Below are positions 3,044-59,916 of a stretch of 64,000 nucleotides of DNA, in pieces. Source of the stretch: Entomortierella parvispora E1425 (Eukaryota; Fungi; Mortierellomycota); the NCBI GenBank assembly GCA_020891255.1, contig BQFW01000007.1, positions 744,001 through 808,000 on the forward strand, given 5' to 3'. Under the pieces are notes generated by a model. It was not told the origin of the DNA, searched no databases, and saw only the letters and a program-made list of their open reading frames with translations. A program made the translations under genes and the position numbers. The number at the start of each line of letters is the position of its first letter. Within the stretch, counting starts at the first letter, position 1.

Positions 3044-4978
3044 TGAGTGGTGGTGTGTTCGGTTGGTCAGGCTGACTGTGTGCCTGCCTGCCTGCCTTGC
3101 CTTGTCAAGAGTCCACAGGGTGGACTATCGTCTCTGCTGCTCCCTTCTCTTCCTCCCCCCCTCCCTCTTGTCCCCCCACTTCGGGCACTTTGATCTTCCT
3201 GCACTTTCTTTGCCAATCTCCAAAGCATTGGGCACCAGCTGGGTGTGGCCCTTTGATCAACTGGGCAGTAGCAGGAGTGTCTGCATGCTTATTCACCCTT
3301 GACATCCACACCGAAAATGAACAATCGGGCAACCACAGCAGCACCACCCTAGCGGCACCATGTTGCATTGTCACCATCGAGGCATGATGACGACAAACAA
3401 AAGTGCGTGTGTCTGTCCACCACCCTCACTCCCTGTCTCCTGTTCCATCCTTCAGGGTTCACAAACACGCCCCTTGGATATCTGACGACCTCCCTCGTCC
3501 ATGCAAGGTCATATCTTCCGGTAGCAATTTTCTTTTGGACCTGTCTATCATTGTCGGTTCTGTCTGTTCGAGTCGTTGGTGACAGCTATCATCTCCACAA
3601 TGGAACATATCCAGGTCTAGTTCTGTTCTCCTGCCCCTTTCTTTTTTTCTTCCGCCCTTGTTTCTCGTGAGTTTGTAGCAGATCATGGATTCCAATGCAT
3701 GCAATTTCTACCTTTATTGGCACATCATCTCCATCGTTGACGCGCTTCTCCTCTTTTATTATCATCCTTTCTAACCGCTGGGTGTAACCATCCGATAACT
3801 TGCTAGTGTCCACCTGGACAAAATAGGAACACCGATGGCCATTGGTGATTCTTTGGTGTTATGGTGTGGTCAGCTTCTGTGAGCTCGTTACTTCACTTCT
3901 CACAGCCCGGGTCTATGGCTCTATCGAAACGGTGGCTTACGACCACCGTCTGTTTGTCAATTGAACGTGGAAGCCAGACGACCCATGCATGTACCATCCT
4001 ATGCTCAAATGAAAGAGCCGTTCTCTCTACCTGTAAAAAGTAAAGATCTTTACTTTATGGCTGATGGATATTTGTACCGGATGTTGCCAATCAAATTACC
4101 GAAACGAATAGGGAAAGAGTAAATAGGAGAAGGCTTTGGGAGATGTACAATAGGCGCCGCTGCGCGTTTCCTACAGATGGATCAGGGGTATGTATGTCTT
4201 CTAACAAAGAGCAGGTCGGGTAAATCCACTGATGGGATGCTGCCGGGTTGCCCCTGTCTCTATTTTTTTTTTTATTATTTTTGTTTCTTGTGCGTCAGCC
4301 ACCATTTTCTGACAAATTCACGCCGTGTTCCAAACCCACGTTCATGACCTGCAAGGTCGTTCGAGCAGTCTGTGCGCCCGAATTGCGCGATTTTTTTTCT
4401 TTGACAGGTTCTCTTCTGTGTTCCGTTGAAAATGTTCCATCAGCGCAGCGTCCTCTGCGGATCAATTCAAATGTCAAAAAAAAGAGGGCTCTTGGATGTT
4501 TGTACTCCCGCCGCACAAGGGGAGACCAGAAAAGGCGAAAAATAAGAAATTGTGGCAGCCACGATGACAGGAATGGACCCCGCAGTTGCCAAGTACAAAG
4601 GGCAAAAAAGGCAACAGCAAGGATCTGATAACCTCTCATACCGCGAAAGCTGCCTAGAGGAAGGCGCGGCGCTTTGAGAACTTGACTGCGCGGTTTGAGA
4701 GGAGGAGTGTTATTTGTCCATGTCAGCAACCCATCGGGTCAATTGTGGCAGTTGGACATGACGAAGTGGGTGTGCTCACAAATCAAAAGAAGCTTAAACA
4801 TCTTGTTATAAAAAGGACCCCCCATCGTGCCCTGCTTTCCTTCTTCTCTTCATCCTCAGCTCGCTTCTCTCGCCTGCCTCTCTTCTTACCCTCCCCACTG
4901 TTCCCACCCTCCCCACCCTCCCCACTCTTCCCACCCTCTCCACTCTTCTCTGCACCTCATTTGAACTGTCCTATAGTC

Positions 4979-54373: not shown

Positions 54374-56485
54374 TTAGTTCATCTGGCGGATCAAGTTGTT
54401 GATCTTGGACTCGCGGTCGCCAGAGTCACCACCCTCGATAAAGTGCAAAGCCTTCTTGGCGGAGTAACCACCGGTGGCGTTGGACAACTTGAAGGGCCAC
54501 AAGAAGTTGGAGGCCTGCTTGAAGTTGGGGCCAACGGTGTAGATCTCGTGGATCAAATCCTCAATGCAGACAATGCCGAACTTGCCGAGGGCCTTCTCGA
54601 TGATCGAGTTGTCGGACAAGGGGATGCGCTGCTTGTTGACCTTGCCATATCCGCGCTTGTAAATGAGCTCGCGAACCGACTTCAGGTTGGGCTCACCGTA
54701 GGCGACGTAGGGGTTGATGAGCTGGAGCATCTGGGTGGTGGCCTTGGTCAAGCGGACAAAGACACCGTTGTTGATCTGGAGAAGACGCAACAGCTGCATG
54801 ACCTTGCGAGGCTTGGGGGCAATGTGGTTGATACCCTTGATACGGATAACGAAGGCAAGCTTGGGCTGGGCGGGAACGTAGAAGTTACCGGCGGCCTTGG
54901 CCTGGCGAGCGAGACGGATCTCGTTACGCTCCTTGGCCTGGTACTCGCGAGTGTACTTCTCAGCACGCTTGAAGATGACCTTGCGGTTAGCCTTGCGAGC
55001 CTGTGAGTGAACAGAAACAAAAAGAACCACAAAAGATTAGTTTTCATTGTCTTTTTCACTCTTGCAAATCGTTGTCCGAACAAATAAAGAACAAACACAG
55101 CAGCAGATCGCAATCTCAAAGTCATTGAATCAGTCCCGAAAGATGGTTGACGTATAGCAACATCGCCAGAAGGCTAGCCACGAAATGCGGTATAGCTTTT
55201 CATCATAATGCTCGAGATGCAACGCCCACTGCTTGTTGTTTGGTTCTTTGGAAATGATAGTTCAAGCAAAAAAAATATATACAAATACATACCTTGCGAG
55301 CAGCGACATCGGCAACACGCTTCTCAGCGGTGGCCTTGTCCTGGGCCTTTCTCTTCTTCAAGAGAGTCTCGGGAACGAGAACATGCTCAAGGGTGGGGGT
55401 GGTGCTGGTGAAATGAAGATTCAATCGAAAAGATAAAGGGATAATACAATTAGGAAAAAAAGATAATCTCGTCGGACTGTCACATATTTCACTCGCTTTT
55501 GTTCTTTTGTAGGTCCTTTTGCTCAGCAATACTAGATCCTCAAGCTACACTCCAATGCTGGACAAGGTCATTTGGGATGGTAATGGCAACGAGCAAGAAA
55601 GAGGCATTGAATAAATCACCCTTGAGTACAAGAGACACAAAGACAGAGACGAGAGAGAGAACCTCAATCATCTTCTGCAATGATCACTCAGGTACCTGAG
55701 AGGTGACAACAATAACCCTTCAATTGAAGTTGCCAAAAAACCCTTCCGGCAAGACCAGACAAAGGAGGCATCATGAGGGGGCAAGCAACACTGGCAAAAT
55801 GGCAAGAGAGGCAAGGTATGCGTTTGACATCCGACGAATTGTTTTAATTGGAGTTGGTGCCAATTTCTTTGTTCCTTGGATCTCTTCAGCAATGAACAGA
55901 TCCAAAAGGGAAAAAAAAGAATTAGAATGGATCATCACCGAGATGATCCAATCAAAAGGCCGCCATCACACAACAACGAACCCATACACATTTGTTCCTC
56001 TGGAGAGAAAAAACGGTTTGGAATACGACATCTGTGTCGATCGACTTGGACAATCAGGTGGATCTAGACTGCGAAAGAACTTCACATCTGAGATCCAGAT
56101 TGCTCGGATTGAGGAAAGCATTACACTTCCAGGGCCGATGAAAAAAGTGTCGATGAACAGAGTCACAGAATGCATTTAAAGCCAAGGGAATGCAATGAAG
56201 CAAGTCCCTAAAGCTCAAGACCCCAAGTAGAGGGAAGAAGTGGCTATCACCGAGATAGGGCTTCTCTTCCCTCGTCATAACCTTGAGAAACAGCAGTTCA
56301 CCGAGGGTTTAAAATAAGCCCGGAGGACAGGGGCCTCACACCGAGCAAGGCATGCCACCGACGACTCTTTAATCTCGTATCTTCCTGTTATCCACAGCGT
56401 CTTATTGGATCAAACAGACATTATATCTTTGAAAAGGTGGTGCTGGAGGGGGGAGGGGACAGCACACGCAAACTTACGTAGTCAT
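54374..56485 (-). CDS. RPL7: 60S ribosomal protein uL30 (L7)
   Basis: Exon 1 ATGACTAC (56485-56478) followed by GTAAGT. Exon 2 55404-55293 ([10 protein letters not shown]). Exon 3 from about 55001 to 54374 ([38 protein letters not shown]). Confidence 0.95.
55126..55210 (-). ncRNA. Intronic box C/D snoRNA, snR39/snR39B family, predicted to guide 2'-O-methylation of the LSU rRNA G equivalent to yeast Gm805
   Basis: Box C ATGATGA (55206-55200), box D CTGA (55133-55130) and a CATT/AATG terminal stem. Guide ACCATCTTTCGGG upstream of box D is the 13-nt complement of the conserved LSU sequence CCCGAAAGAUGGU. Confidence 0.9.
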
Positions 56486-57017: not shown

Positions 57018-58760
57018 TCACCACCAGTCAAAAGCTTTGATCGCGGCTCGCGCGGTAGCATCATCCCCCATTTTTTCTTTGAGGAGATCAGTACCAATTG
57101 GAACATAATGATCCCTCGACTTCCAAAAGCTGTCTCTGGACTTTTTGCCGTATTCTGGCCAGTTTTCCTTCATCCACGTCTGTTCTGCTTCGCCCATATG
57201 GAGACTCATTTTCTCAAGGGTCAACCTTCGTAGACACTTGAGATTCTTCAGCTCATCCAACCCGTCTTGGAGAGACATGGTCAAACATTGGTATTGAGAC
57301 CCCAGCTCATAATTATGAGGCGAGTAATGTGCGCCCTCCAGTCTCTTTTCAATCCGACGAGCCTCACCCGTTTTGCTTCTGTACTCAATCACATCCTTTC
57401 CTAAGGTAACATCTCGAAGCTTCGTGAGGCGTCCAAGCTGAGCTAAAACCCCGCGCTGAATCCTACTGCTCTCTAGCATGGAAGAACGGCAACCTGCATT
57501 GTATTCTCCAGTAAGAGGCCGACCGTTGCCTTTTGAGGTGATGTCTGGCCTGGGGACTCCACTTATATAGCACTTGAAAGTCTCCAACCCAAGACAGGCC
57601 CAATCCTCGGTAGATTCTACAATATCCGTGGCCAACAACGAAAGAGGCTCCAATTCCCCATGGAGGTAGCTTGGGGTGGTATCAAATCGCCTGAGATTTG
57701 GTGCAGAGCACAGCAGCTTTTGGATCGACTTGCTGTCAAATGCCAAGCAGTTGGTCAGTCGAATGTTTTCTAGAGTTGCGCTGTGGCGCAAGATCGCAGC
57801 CATGGAGAGAGGTCCTACTTTGCCAGACATGGACCTAAAGCCCAGAGTCTTCCAGCCCCTAGAAGATACCTTGGAGATGAGCTCAAACAACTCCCTGTCG
57901 CTCCATGTCGCACGGTATGCGTTCAGACTCAACTCTTCCAGTTTCGGAGAACGCTCTAAGAGGGCCACCACGAGCTTCATACTCATAGGGACACCTAATA
58001 TCGAGAGCACCGCTAGGTTTTCGAAGCAGCCCCTCTTATCCAATTCCAGGAAGAGCTCCAACGCCTCGTTTTCCTCTTCTTGCTCTGTTGACGACGTGAC
58101 ATGGCCATGAAATCTCCTATCTGTCACCATTTCTAGTCTTTTCAGACTAGGCGGGAAATTTGCCAGCAGGCGTGCTTGATCTTGCGGATGTAGTGTGCGA
58201 AGAGTCCCTTGGTTTGCAATTGCTGTAACGAACGTAAAGGTAGAAAGTCGAGACGATCGTCCAAGGATCTGAAGGATGGGCTCCATGTCTAAGAGGCCCG
58301 GGAATCCATAAGTACGCCTACGAGATGTTGTTCGACCTGGATCGTCCTCAAAGTCGATGCTGAGTTGCTCAAGTGGAATTGGTTCGAGTGGCAATTGACC
58401 ATGTTCCCAGAAGAGGTTCAGAAAATTCGTGTACTGAACTTTAATGACACGAATTCGATGCAGATTTTGGAGAAAAGGGGACCTTGTTGCCACTGTGTCT
58501 TCACTGCCACTCTTGTCGTTGTGAGATTCAAGGTGTTGACCATAGAGTGCATTGATGCGGTCAAAAACAGGTCGCTCAACGCTGTGGCGACTGACGTCCC
58601 TCAATTTGACCGTATGCCAGAGACTGTCCATGAAGGCCTGATGCCAGGCCTTGTTGACCCGCACGCACACGGAGAGGTCGTGGCTGGATAGAAGAGGAGG
58701 GATCTGGCATATGATCTCAGAAGGGAGCTCGAGTAAAGACAGAACTCGTGTGTTAAGCAT
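57018..58760 (-). CDS. Intronless F-box/LRR protein (paralog of 21969-23609)
   Basis: LLELPSEIICQI..VCVRVNKAWHQAFMDSLW. C-terminal half is nearly collinear with the paralog (CYISGVPRPDIT, SQYQCLTMSLQDGLDEL). Confidence 0.85.
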   Translation of the reverse strand: MLNTRVLSLLELPSEIICQIPPLLSSHDLSVCVRVNKAWHQAFMDSLWHTVKLRDVSRHSVERPVFDRINALYGQHLESHNDKSGSEDTVATRSPFLQNLHRIRVIKVQYTNFLNLFWEHGQLPLEPIPLEQLSIDFEDDPGRTTSRRRTYGFPGLLDMEPILQILGRSSRLSTFTFVTAIANQGTLRTLHPQDQARLLANFPPSLKRLEMVTDRRFHGHVTSSTEQEEENEALELFLELDKRGCFENLAVLSILGVPMSMKLVVALLERSPKLEELSLNAYRATWSDRELFELISKVSSRGWKTLGFRSMSGKVGPLSMAAILRHSATLENIRLTNCLAFDSKSIQKLLCSAPNLRRFDTTPSYLHGELEPLSLLATDIVESTEDWACLGLETFKCYISGVPRPDITSKGNGRPLTGEYNAGCRSSMLESSRIQRGVLAQLGRLTKLRDVTLGKDVIEYRSKTGEARRIEKRLEGAHYSPHNYELGSQYQCLTMSLQDGLDELKNLKCLRRLTLEKMSLHMGEAEQTWMKENWPEYGKKSRDSFWKSRDHYVPIGTDLLKEKMGDDATARAAIKAFDWW

Positions 58761-59916
58761 TGGACAGTATATCGTGTTGAGAGTTGATTCAATGTTGATG
58801 GCAGAGATGAAGAAAAAAAGGAAACAAGGGGCGATGGAGATGGAATGGCAAAGCGACATGACATGGATGGAGTCACAGCGCCCAGAAAAACCGCAGCATG
58901 GCAGTGCCGCCAAAATCGTTATCTTCAAAGCCCTAAATGACAACACGTCTTTCACCTTACTGTTTTTCAACATTTTCCAATGCCCCTCTGCACGAGCGTT
59001 TATATATGGCATTGTCCGCGTCCCGCGGTTTATAACGTCGACAAAGACTTGGAGTGTGAACATCACTGAAAATGCTGCCAACAGAGTCGAAGATACCGAA
59101 TCAGGCGCGCGCCATTGAACCTAACAGAGACGGAGGAGGAAAAGCAGTATTGAACGAGATCCCAAGGTCACAGAGTCAAAAACGCGACCCTGGGCACGGG
59201 AGTCGCCGAGCGCGTCGTCAGAAGCTTTCGGCCATCCATATAGCCTTTAAAAGTCAAAAAGATTAGAAGAGATTGCGTGGTTCCGTCGACAGCAATGAAG
59301 ATCCATCTGCCATTGTTCATTCTTCCTATGGCGTCAAGGGACAAACCAATTGGGCAGGGAAGAAGGCAAGATCGAAGAATTCGGTTTGGTGGCGATCTTG
59401 AGATTCGCCCAAGCCATCGTGGTCGACCATTTCCATGCCACTATTTTCCTTTCTTCTTCCACGTCTTAGCCTCTCTGCAACCCACCCACCACACTTGTCA
59501 ATCATAATCACTCTAGTCATTCATCGCGCCTCACGTTCGCGACTGGCTCTTCTGATCATGCATTTTCTCACCTCCTCCTACACTCCTCGCACATGACACT
59601 ACTTTATGTCCACCTATTGACATTATTGATCTTGCTTGAGCAAGAATGACAACGGGGTTACATATCCTCGCCAGGATTGCACAACCAAATCAATGACCAG
59701 GACAGTTCAAGATCACATTGCTGTAATGTCGCCATACGAATGACGGCGACAGTCAGATTTGCAGCGAGTGGCTGATGAGTACATCGTAATTGGTGATAAA
59801 AGGCGACTTTGGCGGTGCTGGTAGTCTGAATAGTCGGCAAGGTCATCCTACGGCCTTTGATATTTACCACAAGATACTGTTGCTTGTCCCCATAGCAACG
59901 TCAGTACTATCAAGAC

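Follow-up and report, generated by a model that had tools for sequence, protein, structure and literature searches.

The window analysed here is a stretch of 64,000 nucleotides (nt) from Entomortierella parvispora E1425 (Fungi; Mortierellomycota; contig BQFW01000007.1 of assembly GCA_020891255.1, positions 744,001 to 808,000 of the forward strand), and the subject is the long first intron of its RPL7 gene, which encodes the ribosomal protein uL30 in three exons on the minus strand. This intron carries a large multi-helix RNA fold that is conserved across the Mortierellaceae, and from that fold and an analogy with yeast we infer that it could compact the intron, bind uL30 and mediate feedback on splicing. 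In window coordinates the gene is laid out as follows:

56485-56478, minus strand: exon 1 of RPL7/uL30, ATGACTAC, 8 nt, encoding Met-Thr-Th...
56477-55405, minus strand: intron 1, GTAAGT...CAG, 1073 nt
55404-55293, minus strand: exon 2
55292-55001, minus strand: intron 2
55000-54374, minus strand: exon 3

The spliced product, of 248 amino acids (aa), matches the uL30/RPL7 deposited for E. parvispora with 100% identity, and the deposited model has the identical tiny first exon; this bears out the placement of a 1073-nt RPL7 intron 1 at 55405-56477 in a preliminary description of the window. The exon 1/intron junction, ATGACNAC/GTAAG, is likewise kept in RPL7 orthologues.

Relatives of the gene were found by an exon-3 protein search for Mortierellaceae RPL7 followed by retrieval of the loci, which supplied E. 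chlamydospora, E. lignicola, Linnemannia elongata (both paralogues), Podila horticola, Mortierella sp. AD032, M. alpina, Haplosporangium, Benniella and Actinomortierella wolfii, with three soil metagenome contigs added by pattern search. The comparison set consists of 14 Mortierellaceae RPL7 introns, covering eight named genera, both of two old paralogue lineages and the three soil contigs, and its orthology is supported by the gene order Arf-RPL7-Pik1, whole or partial in almost all loci (in the window the Pik1 N-terminus lies directly downstream of RPL7). Intron 1 is long in every one of the 14 sequences, at 721-1384 nt, and its aligned columns are ~50-60% identical to the window sequence. 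Invariant columns (121 in 14/14 sequences, 159 in at least 13 of 14) cluster into about eight blocks, which together with a short conserved upstream element read:

A0, 56402-56397, minus strand: AGACGY, conserved in the alignment, outside the helices assigned below
B1, 56388-56383, minus strand: ACAGGA
B2, from 56288, minus strand: CUGUUUCUCAAGG..ACGA
B3, minus strand: UCUACUUGGGGUCUUGAGCUUUAGGGA
B4, minus strand: UCCCUUGGCUUUAAAUGCAUUCUGUGAC
B4b, 56170-56158, minus strand: AUUCUGUGACUCUG, comprising the 3' strand of helix P1 (56165-56170) and the 5' strand of helix P4 (56158-56164)
B5, from 56034, minus strand: GUCGUAUUCCAAACCG
B6, minus strand: AAAUGUGUAUGGGUUCGUUGUUGUGUGAUGG
B7, 55857-55825, minus strand: CCAACUCCAAUUAAAACAAUUCGUCGGAUGUCAA, written CCAACUCCAAUUAAAACAAUUCGUCGGAUGUCA in the window, comprising the 3' strand of helix P6, a linker of 8 nt and, at 55837-55825, the 5' strand of helix P7
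B8, 55482-55469, minus strand: GACAGUCCGACGAG, written UGACAGUCCGACGA in the window

Within these blocks, AUUCUGUGAC of B4b and UCGUCGGAUGUCAA of B7 are invariant in 14/14. The two old RPL7 paralogue lineages of the Mortierellaceae each stand beside an Arf GTPase gene, as segmental or whole-genome duplicates, and the domain is kept in both of them. The lineages differ at the 5' splice site (GTAAGT vs GTAAGG) and in helix P3 (AGGGA/UCCCU vs AAGGA/UCCUU), as seen in the Linnemannia elongata loci L003 vs L009. All four sequencing runs compared with the window consist of DNA contigs; one strain among them is ~97% identical over intron 1 and a more distant one ~90% identical over most of the intron, and a second E. 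parvispora RPL7 copy is present in the contigs of every run.

For the secondary structure, 11 introns were folded separately by partition function, the pair probabilities were projected onto the alignment, and 72 pairs were then curated, with matching helices recovered in most or all of the 11 separate folds. Standard pairs fill 97.1% of 1000 cells of this curated structure and both sides have changed in 19 pairs, as compared with 39-47% standard pairs and 1-9 pairs changed on both sides in a control in which the partner strand was slid by 1-3 columns; none of 1000 shuffles, which ignore phylogeny, matches the observed values. The 118 G.U cells indicate that it is the sense strand that is folded (971 vs 866 of 1000 cells paired). 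The helices are the following:

P1 (tentative), 56388-56383 / 56170-56165, minus strand: ACAGGA / UUCUGU, 97.6% of cells paired, hardly any variation
P2, 56288-56282 / 56227-56221, minus strand: UCUCAAG / CUUGGGG (B2 / part of B3), 99% paired
P3, hairpin, 56216-56205 / 56189-56179, minus strand: GAGC..AGGGA / UCCCU..GCUU, 100% paired
P4, 56164-56158 / 56034-56027, minus strand: B4b / start of B5
P5, hairpin, 56022-56006 / 55999-55981, minus strand: blocks B5/B6
PK, tentative pseudoknot, 56276-56272 / 55979-55975, minus strand: GACGA / UCGUU, 65/65 cells paired
P6, 55974-55963 / 55857-55847, minus strand: GUUGUGUGAUGG (end of B6) / CCAACUCCAAU (B7)
P7, 55837-55825 / 55482-55469, minus strand: long-range helix of 13 base pairs (bp) with a G bulge, B7 / B8

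Compensatory changes support P2, P3, P4 and P5. P2 shows switches from AU to GC at two positions, and 0/1000 shuffles match its observed values; P3, which closes a semi-conserved loop (UUGCUUCAUUGCAU), pairs as GC in one of the paralogue lineages and as AU in the second; and the P4 position 56161:56031 shows UA, AU, GC and CG, the helix being predicted in 8-9 of the 11 separately folded species. P5 has a mean pair probability of 0.6-0.94 in the 11 independent folds and eight pairs changed on both sides; 0/500 shuffles match the observed value in four of five measures, and its slid controls pair 24-63% of cells. P6 shows one GC to AU switch and contains conserved A.A and U.U mismatches. P7 has a pair probability of 0.8-1.0 in all 11 separate folds and is invariant in all sequences, its support consisting of complementarity. 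In the putative pseudoknot a CG pair becomes GU in Podila and 4/1000 shuffles match, with G/U-rich control pairings behaving similarly, and for P1 the CUGUU of B2 offers an alternative partner for the ACAGGA of B1. Both P1 and PK are graded as tentative because G/U-rich blocks give spurious 5-bp "helices" in a control with impossible parallel geometry. A strict stacked-helix search was set aside as evidence by itself, since this control gave as many helices, as was a pairing of B1 with the UCC of the candidate branch motif (mean probability 0.39, lost in Podila).

Between the conserved helices lie arms that are free to vary, preceded by a leader (mean folding z values over 14 species):

56477-56403, minus strand: 5' leader of intron 1, unstructured and pyrimidine-rich, mean z +0.4
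56382-56296, minus strand: variable arm 1, with GTCGGTG, two CTCGGTG copies and a weak hairpin, mean z -2.7
56273-56230, minus strand: variable arm 2 (apical P2), with a nested C-UCGGU-G hairpin, mean z -3.2
56157-56035, minus strand: variable arm 3 (interior P4), with the TGGATCT hairpin 56059-56097, mean z -2.7
55962-55858, minus strand: variable arm 4 (interior P6), with hairpins 55928-55950 (9-bp stem, C-UCGGU-G) and 55876-55905, mean z -3.7
55824-55483, minus strand: variable arm 5 (interior P7), mean z -3.9

Although the arms vary in sequence and length, they are more stably folded than shuffled sequences in almost all species (mean z -2.7 to -4.4). Arm 1 is not conserved in sequence, yet has a hairpin in nearly every species; the site of arm 2 is occupied in other species by a hairpin of unrelated sequence; and in those species arm 3 measures 16-153 nt and arm 5 96-434 nt. 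It is in these arms that the features of the preliminary description are found. It had placed sense-strand CTCGGTG at four sites (56345-56339, 56305-56299, 56254-56248 and 55942-55936), all of which are exact, together with a GTCGGTG variant, which lies at 56362-56356, and all five of its hairpins form in the manner described there, with energies from -2.3 to -19.1 kcal/mol:

55950-55928, minus strand: hairpin with 9-bp stem and UCGGU loop, -12.8 kcal/mol
56273-56230, minus strand: nested C-UCGGU-G hairpin, -19.1 kcal/mol
56350-56335, minus strand: weak hairpin, -2.3 kcal/mol
56097-56059, minus strand: TGGATCT hairpin, -16.3 kcal/mol
55905-55876, minus strand: TGGATCT-type hairpin, -14.7 kcal/mol

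Since the arms are variable yet folded, these hairpins are to be regarded as the E. parvispora versions of arms borne on a conserved scaffold; on sequence comparison the CUCGGUG hairpins are species-specific forms, outside the conserved functional core. The earlier proposal of a structured RNA in this intron thus stands in as much as relatives share a conserved and covarying fold, but neither the CUCGGUG nor the TGGATCT hairpins are among its conserved parts: the conservation and covariation for which an alignment of orthologues had been proposed as a test are present, in eight other blocks and their helices.

The 3' side of the domain is anchored near the 3' end of the intron. A candidate branch-site motif, read from the sequence, follows P7 by 14 nt:

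55454-55449, minus strand: CCUAAU, candidate branch-site motif

This CCUAAU (UUUAAU in Podila) lies 9-17 nt after B8 in all species, while the domain begins, as a rule, 33-75 nt past the 5' splice site, the leader having that length in the other species. The helices are consecutive along the chain and each closes its own arm, and the path from B1 to B8 therefore shrinks to a few junction nucleotides.

No Rfam family accounts for the fold. A search with Rfam 15 at the gathering threshold returned no match in the window, the only match in 15 related loci was snR39 in intron 2, and permissive scans (E up to 10) of three introns gave only unrelated, chance-level matches in intron 1; the Rfam comparison proposed in the preliminary description thus returned no known family for this intron. 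Telomerase RNA, RNase P/MRP and U3 were considered by their conserved motifs and set aside, there being no template-like repeat, CR-I/CR-V arrangement or box A/B/C, although these comparisons serve as leads and not as tests. Mimicry of ribosomal RNA was also dropped, the likeness of B7 (AAUUAAAACAA...) to a part of domain IV of 25S rRNA amounting to a 10-mer match at chance level. On the window, a covariance model of P5 reaches 92.6 bits, with nothing above chance elsewhere in it, and the element appears to be confined to the Mortierellaceae at the sensitivity of this model. The corresponding intron 1 is about 90 nt long in Gigaspora margarita and about 537 nt (3946-4482) in Umbelopsis nana. 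By eye, only a candidate UAGGG(G)A/UC(U)CCCU helix is common to yeast, Umbelopsis and P3. The Umbelopsis nana intron contains UAGGGGAGA (about 4031-4039) and UCUCCCU (about 4288-4294), as well as CUCUCGGUGUG; the pair recalls both P3 and the UAGGGGA/UCUCCCUU flanking the yeast structure discussed below, and is a lead for deep homology. A description of the Mortierellaceae intron 1 element was not found in Rfam or in the literature searched.

The adjacent intron 2 hosts a small nucleolar RNA (snoRNA) of known type:

55128-55210, minus strand: box C/D snoRNA of the snR39/snR59 type, in which guide ACCAUCUUUCGGG precedes box D

Its score in the window is 30.3 bits, short of the Rfam cut-off of 40; in 11 related loci the score is 40.7-48.2 bits. 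The snoRNA forms a conserved island in the strain and paralogue DNA contigs. This snoRNA also bears on the "rpl7 motif" of Li & Breaker 2017, a conserved hairpin of ~30 nt in RPL7 introns, one Rhizopus example included (PMC5640933). The hairpin, GCGACUAGACC..GGUCGAUGCUGUCGC, has no match in intron 1, and the identification of intron 1 with the motif was accordingly rejected. At about 55150-55185 of the window it is the internal hairpin of the intron 2 snoRNA, in 11 of the 12 loci with intron 2 (not in L003), and it also matches the stretch of yeast snR59 shown in Fig. S4 of PMC12311795. In sequence terms, the rpl7 motif looks like the C'/D' part of snR39/59 as opposed to a separate splicing element.

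The closest comparison for the intron 1 domain is offered by budding yeast, where Rpl7 binds a conserved structure of ~156 nt in intron 1 of RPL7B and represses splicing (PMC12311795, Granas 2025). There the structure and a zipper stem, which lies immediately ahead of a weak branch site, are in competition, and splicing drops about 7-fold (PMC12311795); this "Hooks structure" is known only in Saccharomycetaceae and Candida (PMC4937481, Hooks 2016; PMC8216456). The likeness of the yeast RPL7B/RPL7A genes to the present one extends over the uL30 gene itself, a short exon 1 (11 nt in yeast, 8 nt here), an intron 1 that is long, structured and conserved, a long-range helix immediately ahead of the branch site (a candidate motif here) and an intron 2 with snR39/59. 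The yeast element has three stems in ~156 nt; in the Mortierellaceae domain the conserved core amounts to ~250 nt, distributed over 0.6-1.3 kilobases (kb), and includes five or more supported helices as well as a possible pseudoknot. Neither the mutually exclusive pairing nor the weak branch site of yeast was found in it. Own-product binding to a pre-mRNA structure that blocks splicing is also established for yeast RPL30, RPS14B, RPL22B and RPS9A/B (PMC12311795). Those elements are small, some tens of nt, and are situated close to the 5' splice site or at it, whereas the Mortierellaceae domain is far larger and anchored on the side of the branch site. By analogy, the element would be a new and much larger relative in kind of these ribosomal protein intron elements, and at most a putative member of the yeast family.

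On account of the shared gene, layout, snoRNA-bearing intron 2 and branch-site helix, intron 1 is read here as holding a cis-acting domain that most likely senses uL30. About an even chance is given to a structured domain by which the intron is compacted and uL30 sensed, in analogy with the autoregulation of yeast RPL7B. Under this reading, the closed-helix chain P1-P4-P5-P6-P7 would compact the intron of 0.7-1.4 kb, and the 5' splice site, which 33-75 nt of unstructured RNA separate from the start of the domain, would be drawn near the branch site, helping splicing. The invariant unpaired and mismatched parts could then provide a binding surface for excess uL30, the binding of which would lower splicing and hold uL30 synthesis to ribosome demand, as in yeast RPL7B intron 1.

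Several observations weigh against this reading. With respect to a yeast-like switch, no conserved and covarying alternative pairing was found, the candidates being B1 with B2 or B4b and B8 with B6; further, CUAAU also precedes the 3' end of intron 2, and a weak branch site is not evident. Sequence similarity to the yeast structure was not demonstrated, and the P5 covariance model finds nothing above chance in the RPL7 loci of Gigaspora margarita and Umbelopsis nana. As regards the fold itself, P1, P6, P7 and PK rest mostly on invariant complementarity, the parallel-geometry control yields 25 short conserved "helices" vs 19, and the shuffles that the 72-pair structure surpasses take no account of phylogeny.

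It is also conceivable, if somewhat doubtful, that the domain represents an undescribed class, namely a large and possibly pseudoknotted intronic RNA that predates both the Mortierellaceae genera and the paralogue split, acting either as a protein-sensing splicing switch of riboswitch complexity or as a stable RNA in ribosome production. Fungal thiamine pyrophosphate (TPP) riboswitches, as in NMT1 and THI4, are comparable in that a deeply conserved multi-helix fold in a spliceosomal intron governs splice-site use. They differ in having a metabolite ligand and thiamine host genes, and their fold is in Rfam, so that the search would have found TPP.

A narrower alternative, considered unlikely, is that the intron is a structural splicing enhancer only, in which zipper stems bring the 5' splice site and branch site together with no protein feedback. 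The serial closed helices, the position of P7 directly before the branch motif and the arms that are free in sequence yet folded are all in keeping with it, and the long ribosomal protein introns of yeast commonly contain zipper stems (PMC12311795). However, compaction needs pairing and not sequence, and an enhancer of this kind leaves unexplained the invariant blocks of 10-14 bases, the conserved A.A and U.U mismatches of P6, the unpaired linkers AAAACAAU and UUUAAAUGCA, and the keeping of identical sequences in both paralogue lineages.

It is decidedly unlikely that the B1-B8 domain is instead an independent non-coding RNA, freed from the spliced intron, stable and acting in trans, for example in ribosome assembly. 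Invariant blocks together with arms that vary but stay folded are what large functional RNAs show, the adjacent intron 2 hosts a trans-acting snoRNA kept in both paralogues, and reverse transcription PCR in yeast was interpreted as showing a processed RNA from RPL7B intron 1 (PMC4937481). Against this, the blocks contain no conserved C/D or H/ACA elements, no Rfam family matches intron 1 in the window or the 15 related loci, and in every species only 9-17 nt separate the 3' strand of the domain from the candidate branch site, which points to a role in splicing.

The version put forward in the preliminary description, in which the C-UCGGU-G loops would offer multivalent binding to uL30 or to some other protein and would be the functional element, appears highly improbable. 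In its favour, there are four exact copies and one variant of the motif, of which three stand in hairpin loops, and two share ATCTCGGTGAT. The expectation of ~0.07 copies by chance, given there as a post hoc estimate, is of the right order, a first-order Markov (Markov-1) model giving 0.047 for CTCGGTG, but it concerns a motif picked after it had been seen: some non-trivial 7-mer reaches at least four copies in 211 of 2000 Markov-1 simulated introns (about 0.1), and over the whole window the 11 CTCGGTG occurrences vs 7.4 expected amount to no enrichment. The motif occurs only in E. parvispora, with no copy in the 13 related introns, two congeneric species included, and all the CUCGGUG/UCGGU-loop and TGGATCT hairpins sit in arms variable in length and sequence, so that the repeated loops do not hold up as a conserved signal. 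As to the shared 11-mer (55936-55946 and 56248-56258), it covers the loop and first stem pairs in two different arms and could be a small duplication or a species-specific loop preference.

That intron 1 hosts one or more unannotated snoRNAs, with the blocks as guides and boxes, is barely credible: fungal ribosomal protein introns often host snoRNAs, as intron 2 does here, and weak SNORD25 and SNORA52 matches occur at 55841-55945, but these reach only 15.8-17.2 bits (E=1.2-6.6) in a variable arm, scans of two orthologues gave unrelated chance matches, and neither a box C/D (RUGAUGA, CUGA) nor an H/ACA (ANANNA, ACA) arrangement is conserved in the invariant blocks, by eye and in the alignment.

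With regard to the gene neighbourhood, a 687-aa open reading frame at 57018-59081 (minus strand) lies directly upstream of RPL7 in the window, in the place taken in other species by the Arf gene, at a distance of 1.1-1.5 kb; an insertion or rearrangement may have affected the RPL7 neighbourhood. Additionally, several deposited RPL7 models (260-277 aa; P0004, P0142, P0150, P0039) start at an ATG within intron 1 and miss the first exon of 8-11 nt, located far upstream, the model start vs the real exon 1 standing at 4001 vs 3660 in locus L002, 4001 vs 3116 in L007 and 4001 vs about 3935 in L016. The absence of the 8-nt first exon from many deposited models is a consequence of the long intron 1, and their correction is a practical gain of this analysis.

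The Mortierellaceae intron further offers a tractable model for the folding of a spliceosomal intron of ~1 kb in an organism with apparently mostly short introns, with 14 natural variants at hand and culturable species in Mortierella alpina and Linnemannia elongata. What is known of splicing autoregulation in ribosomal protein genes comes almost entirely from budding yeast, where the uL30 case was demonstrated in 2025. That a much larger fold occupies intron 1 of the uL30 gene in a distant phylum as well suggests that feedback through this intron is either ancient or was invented twice.

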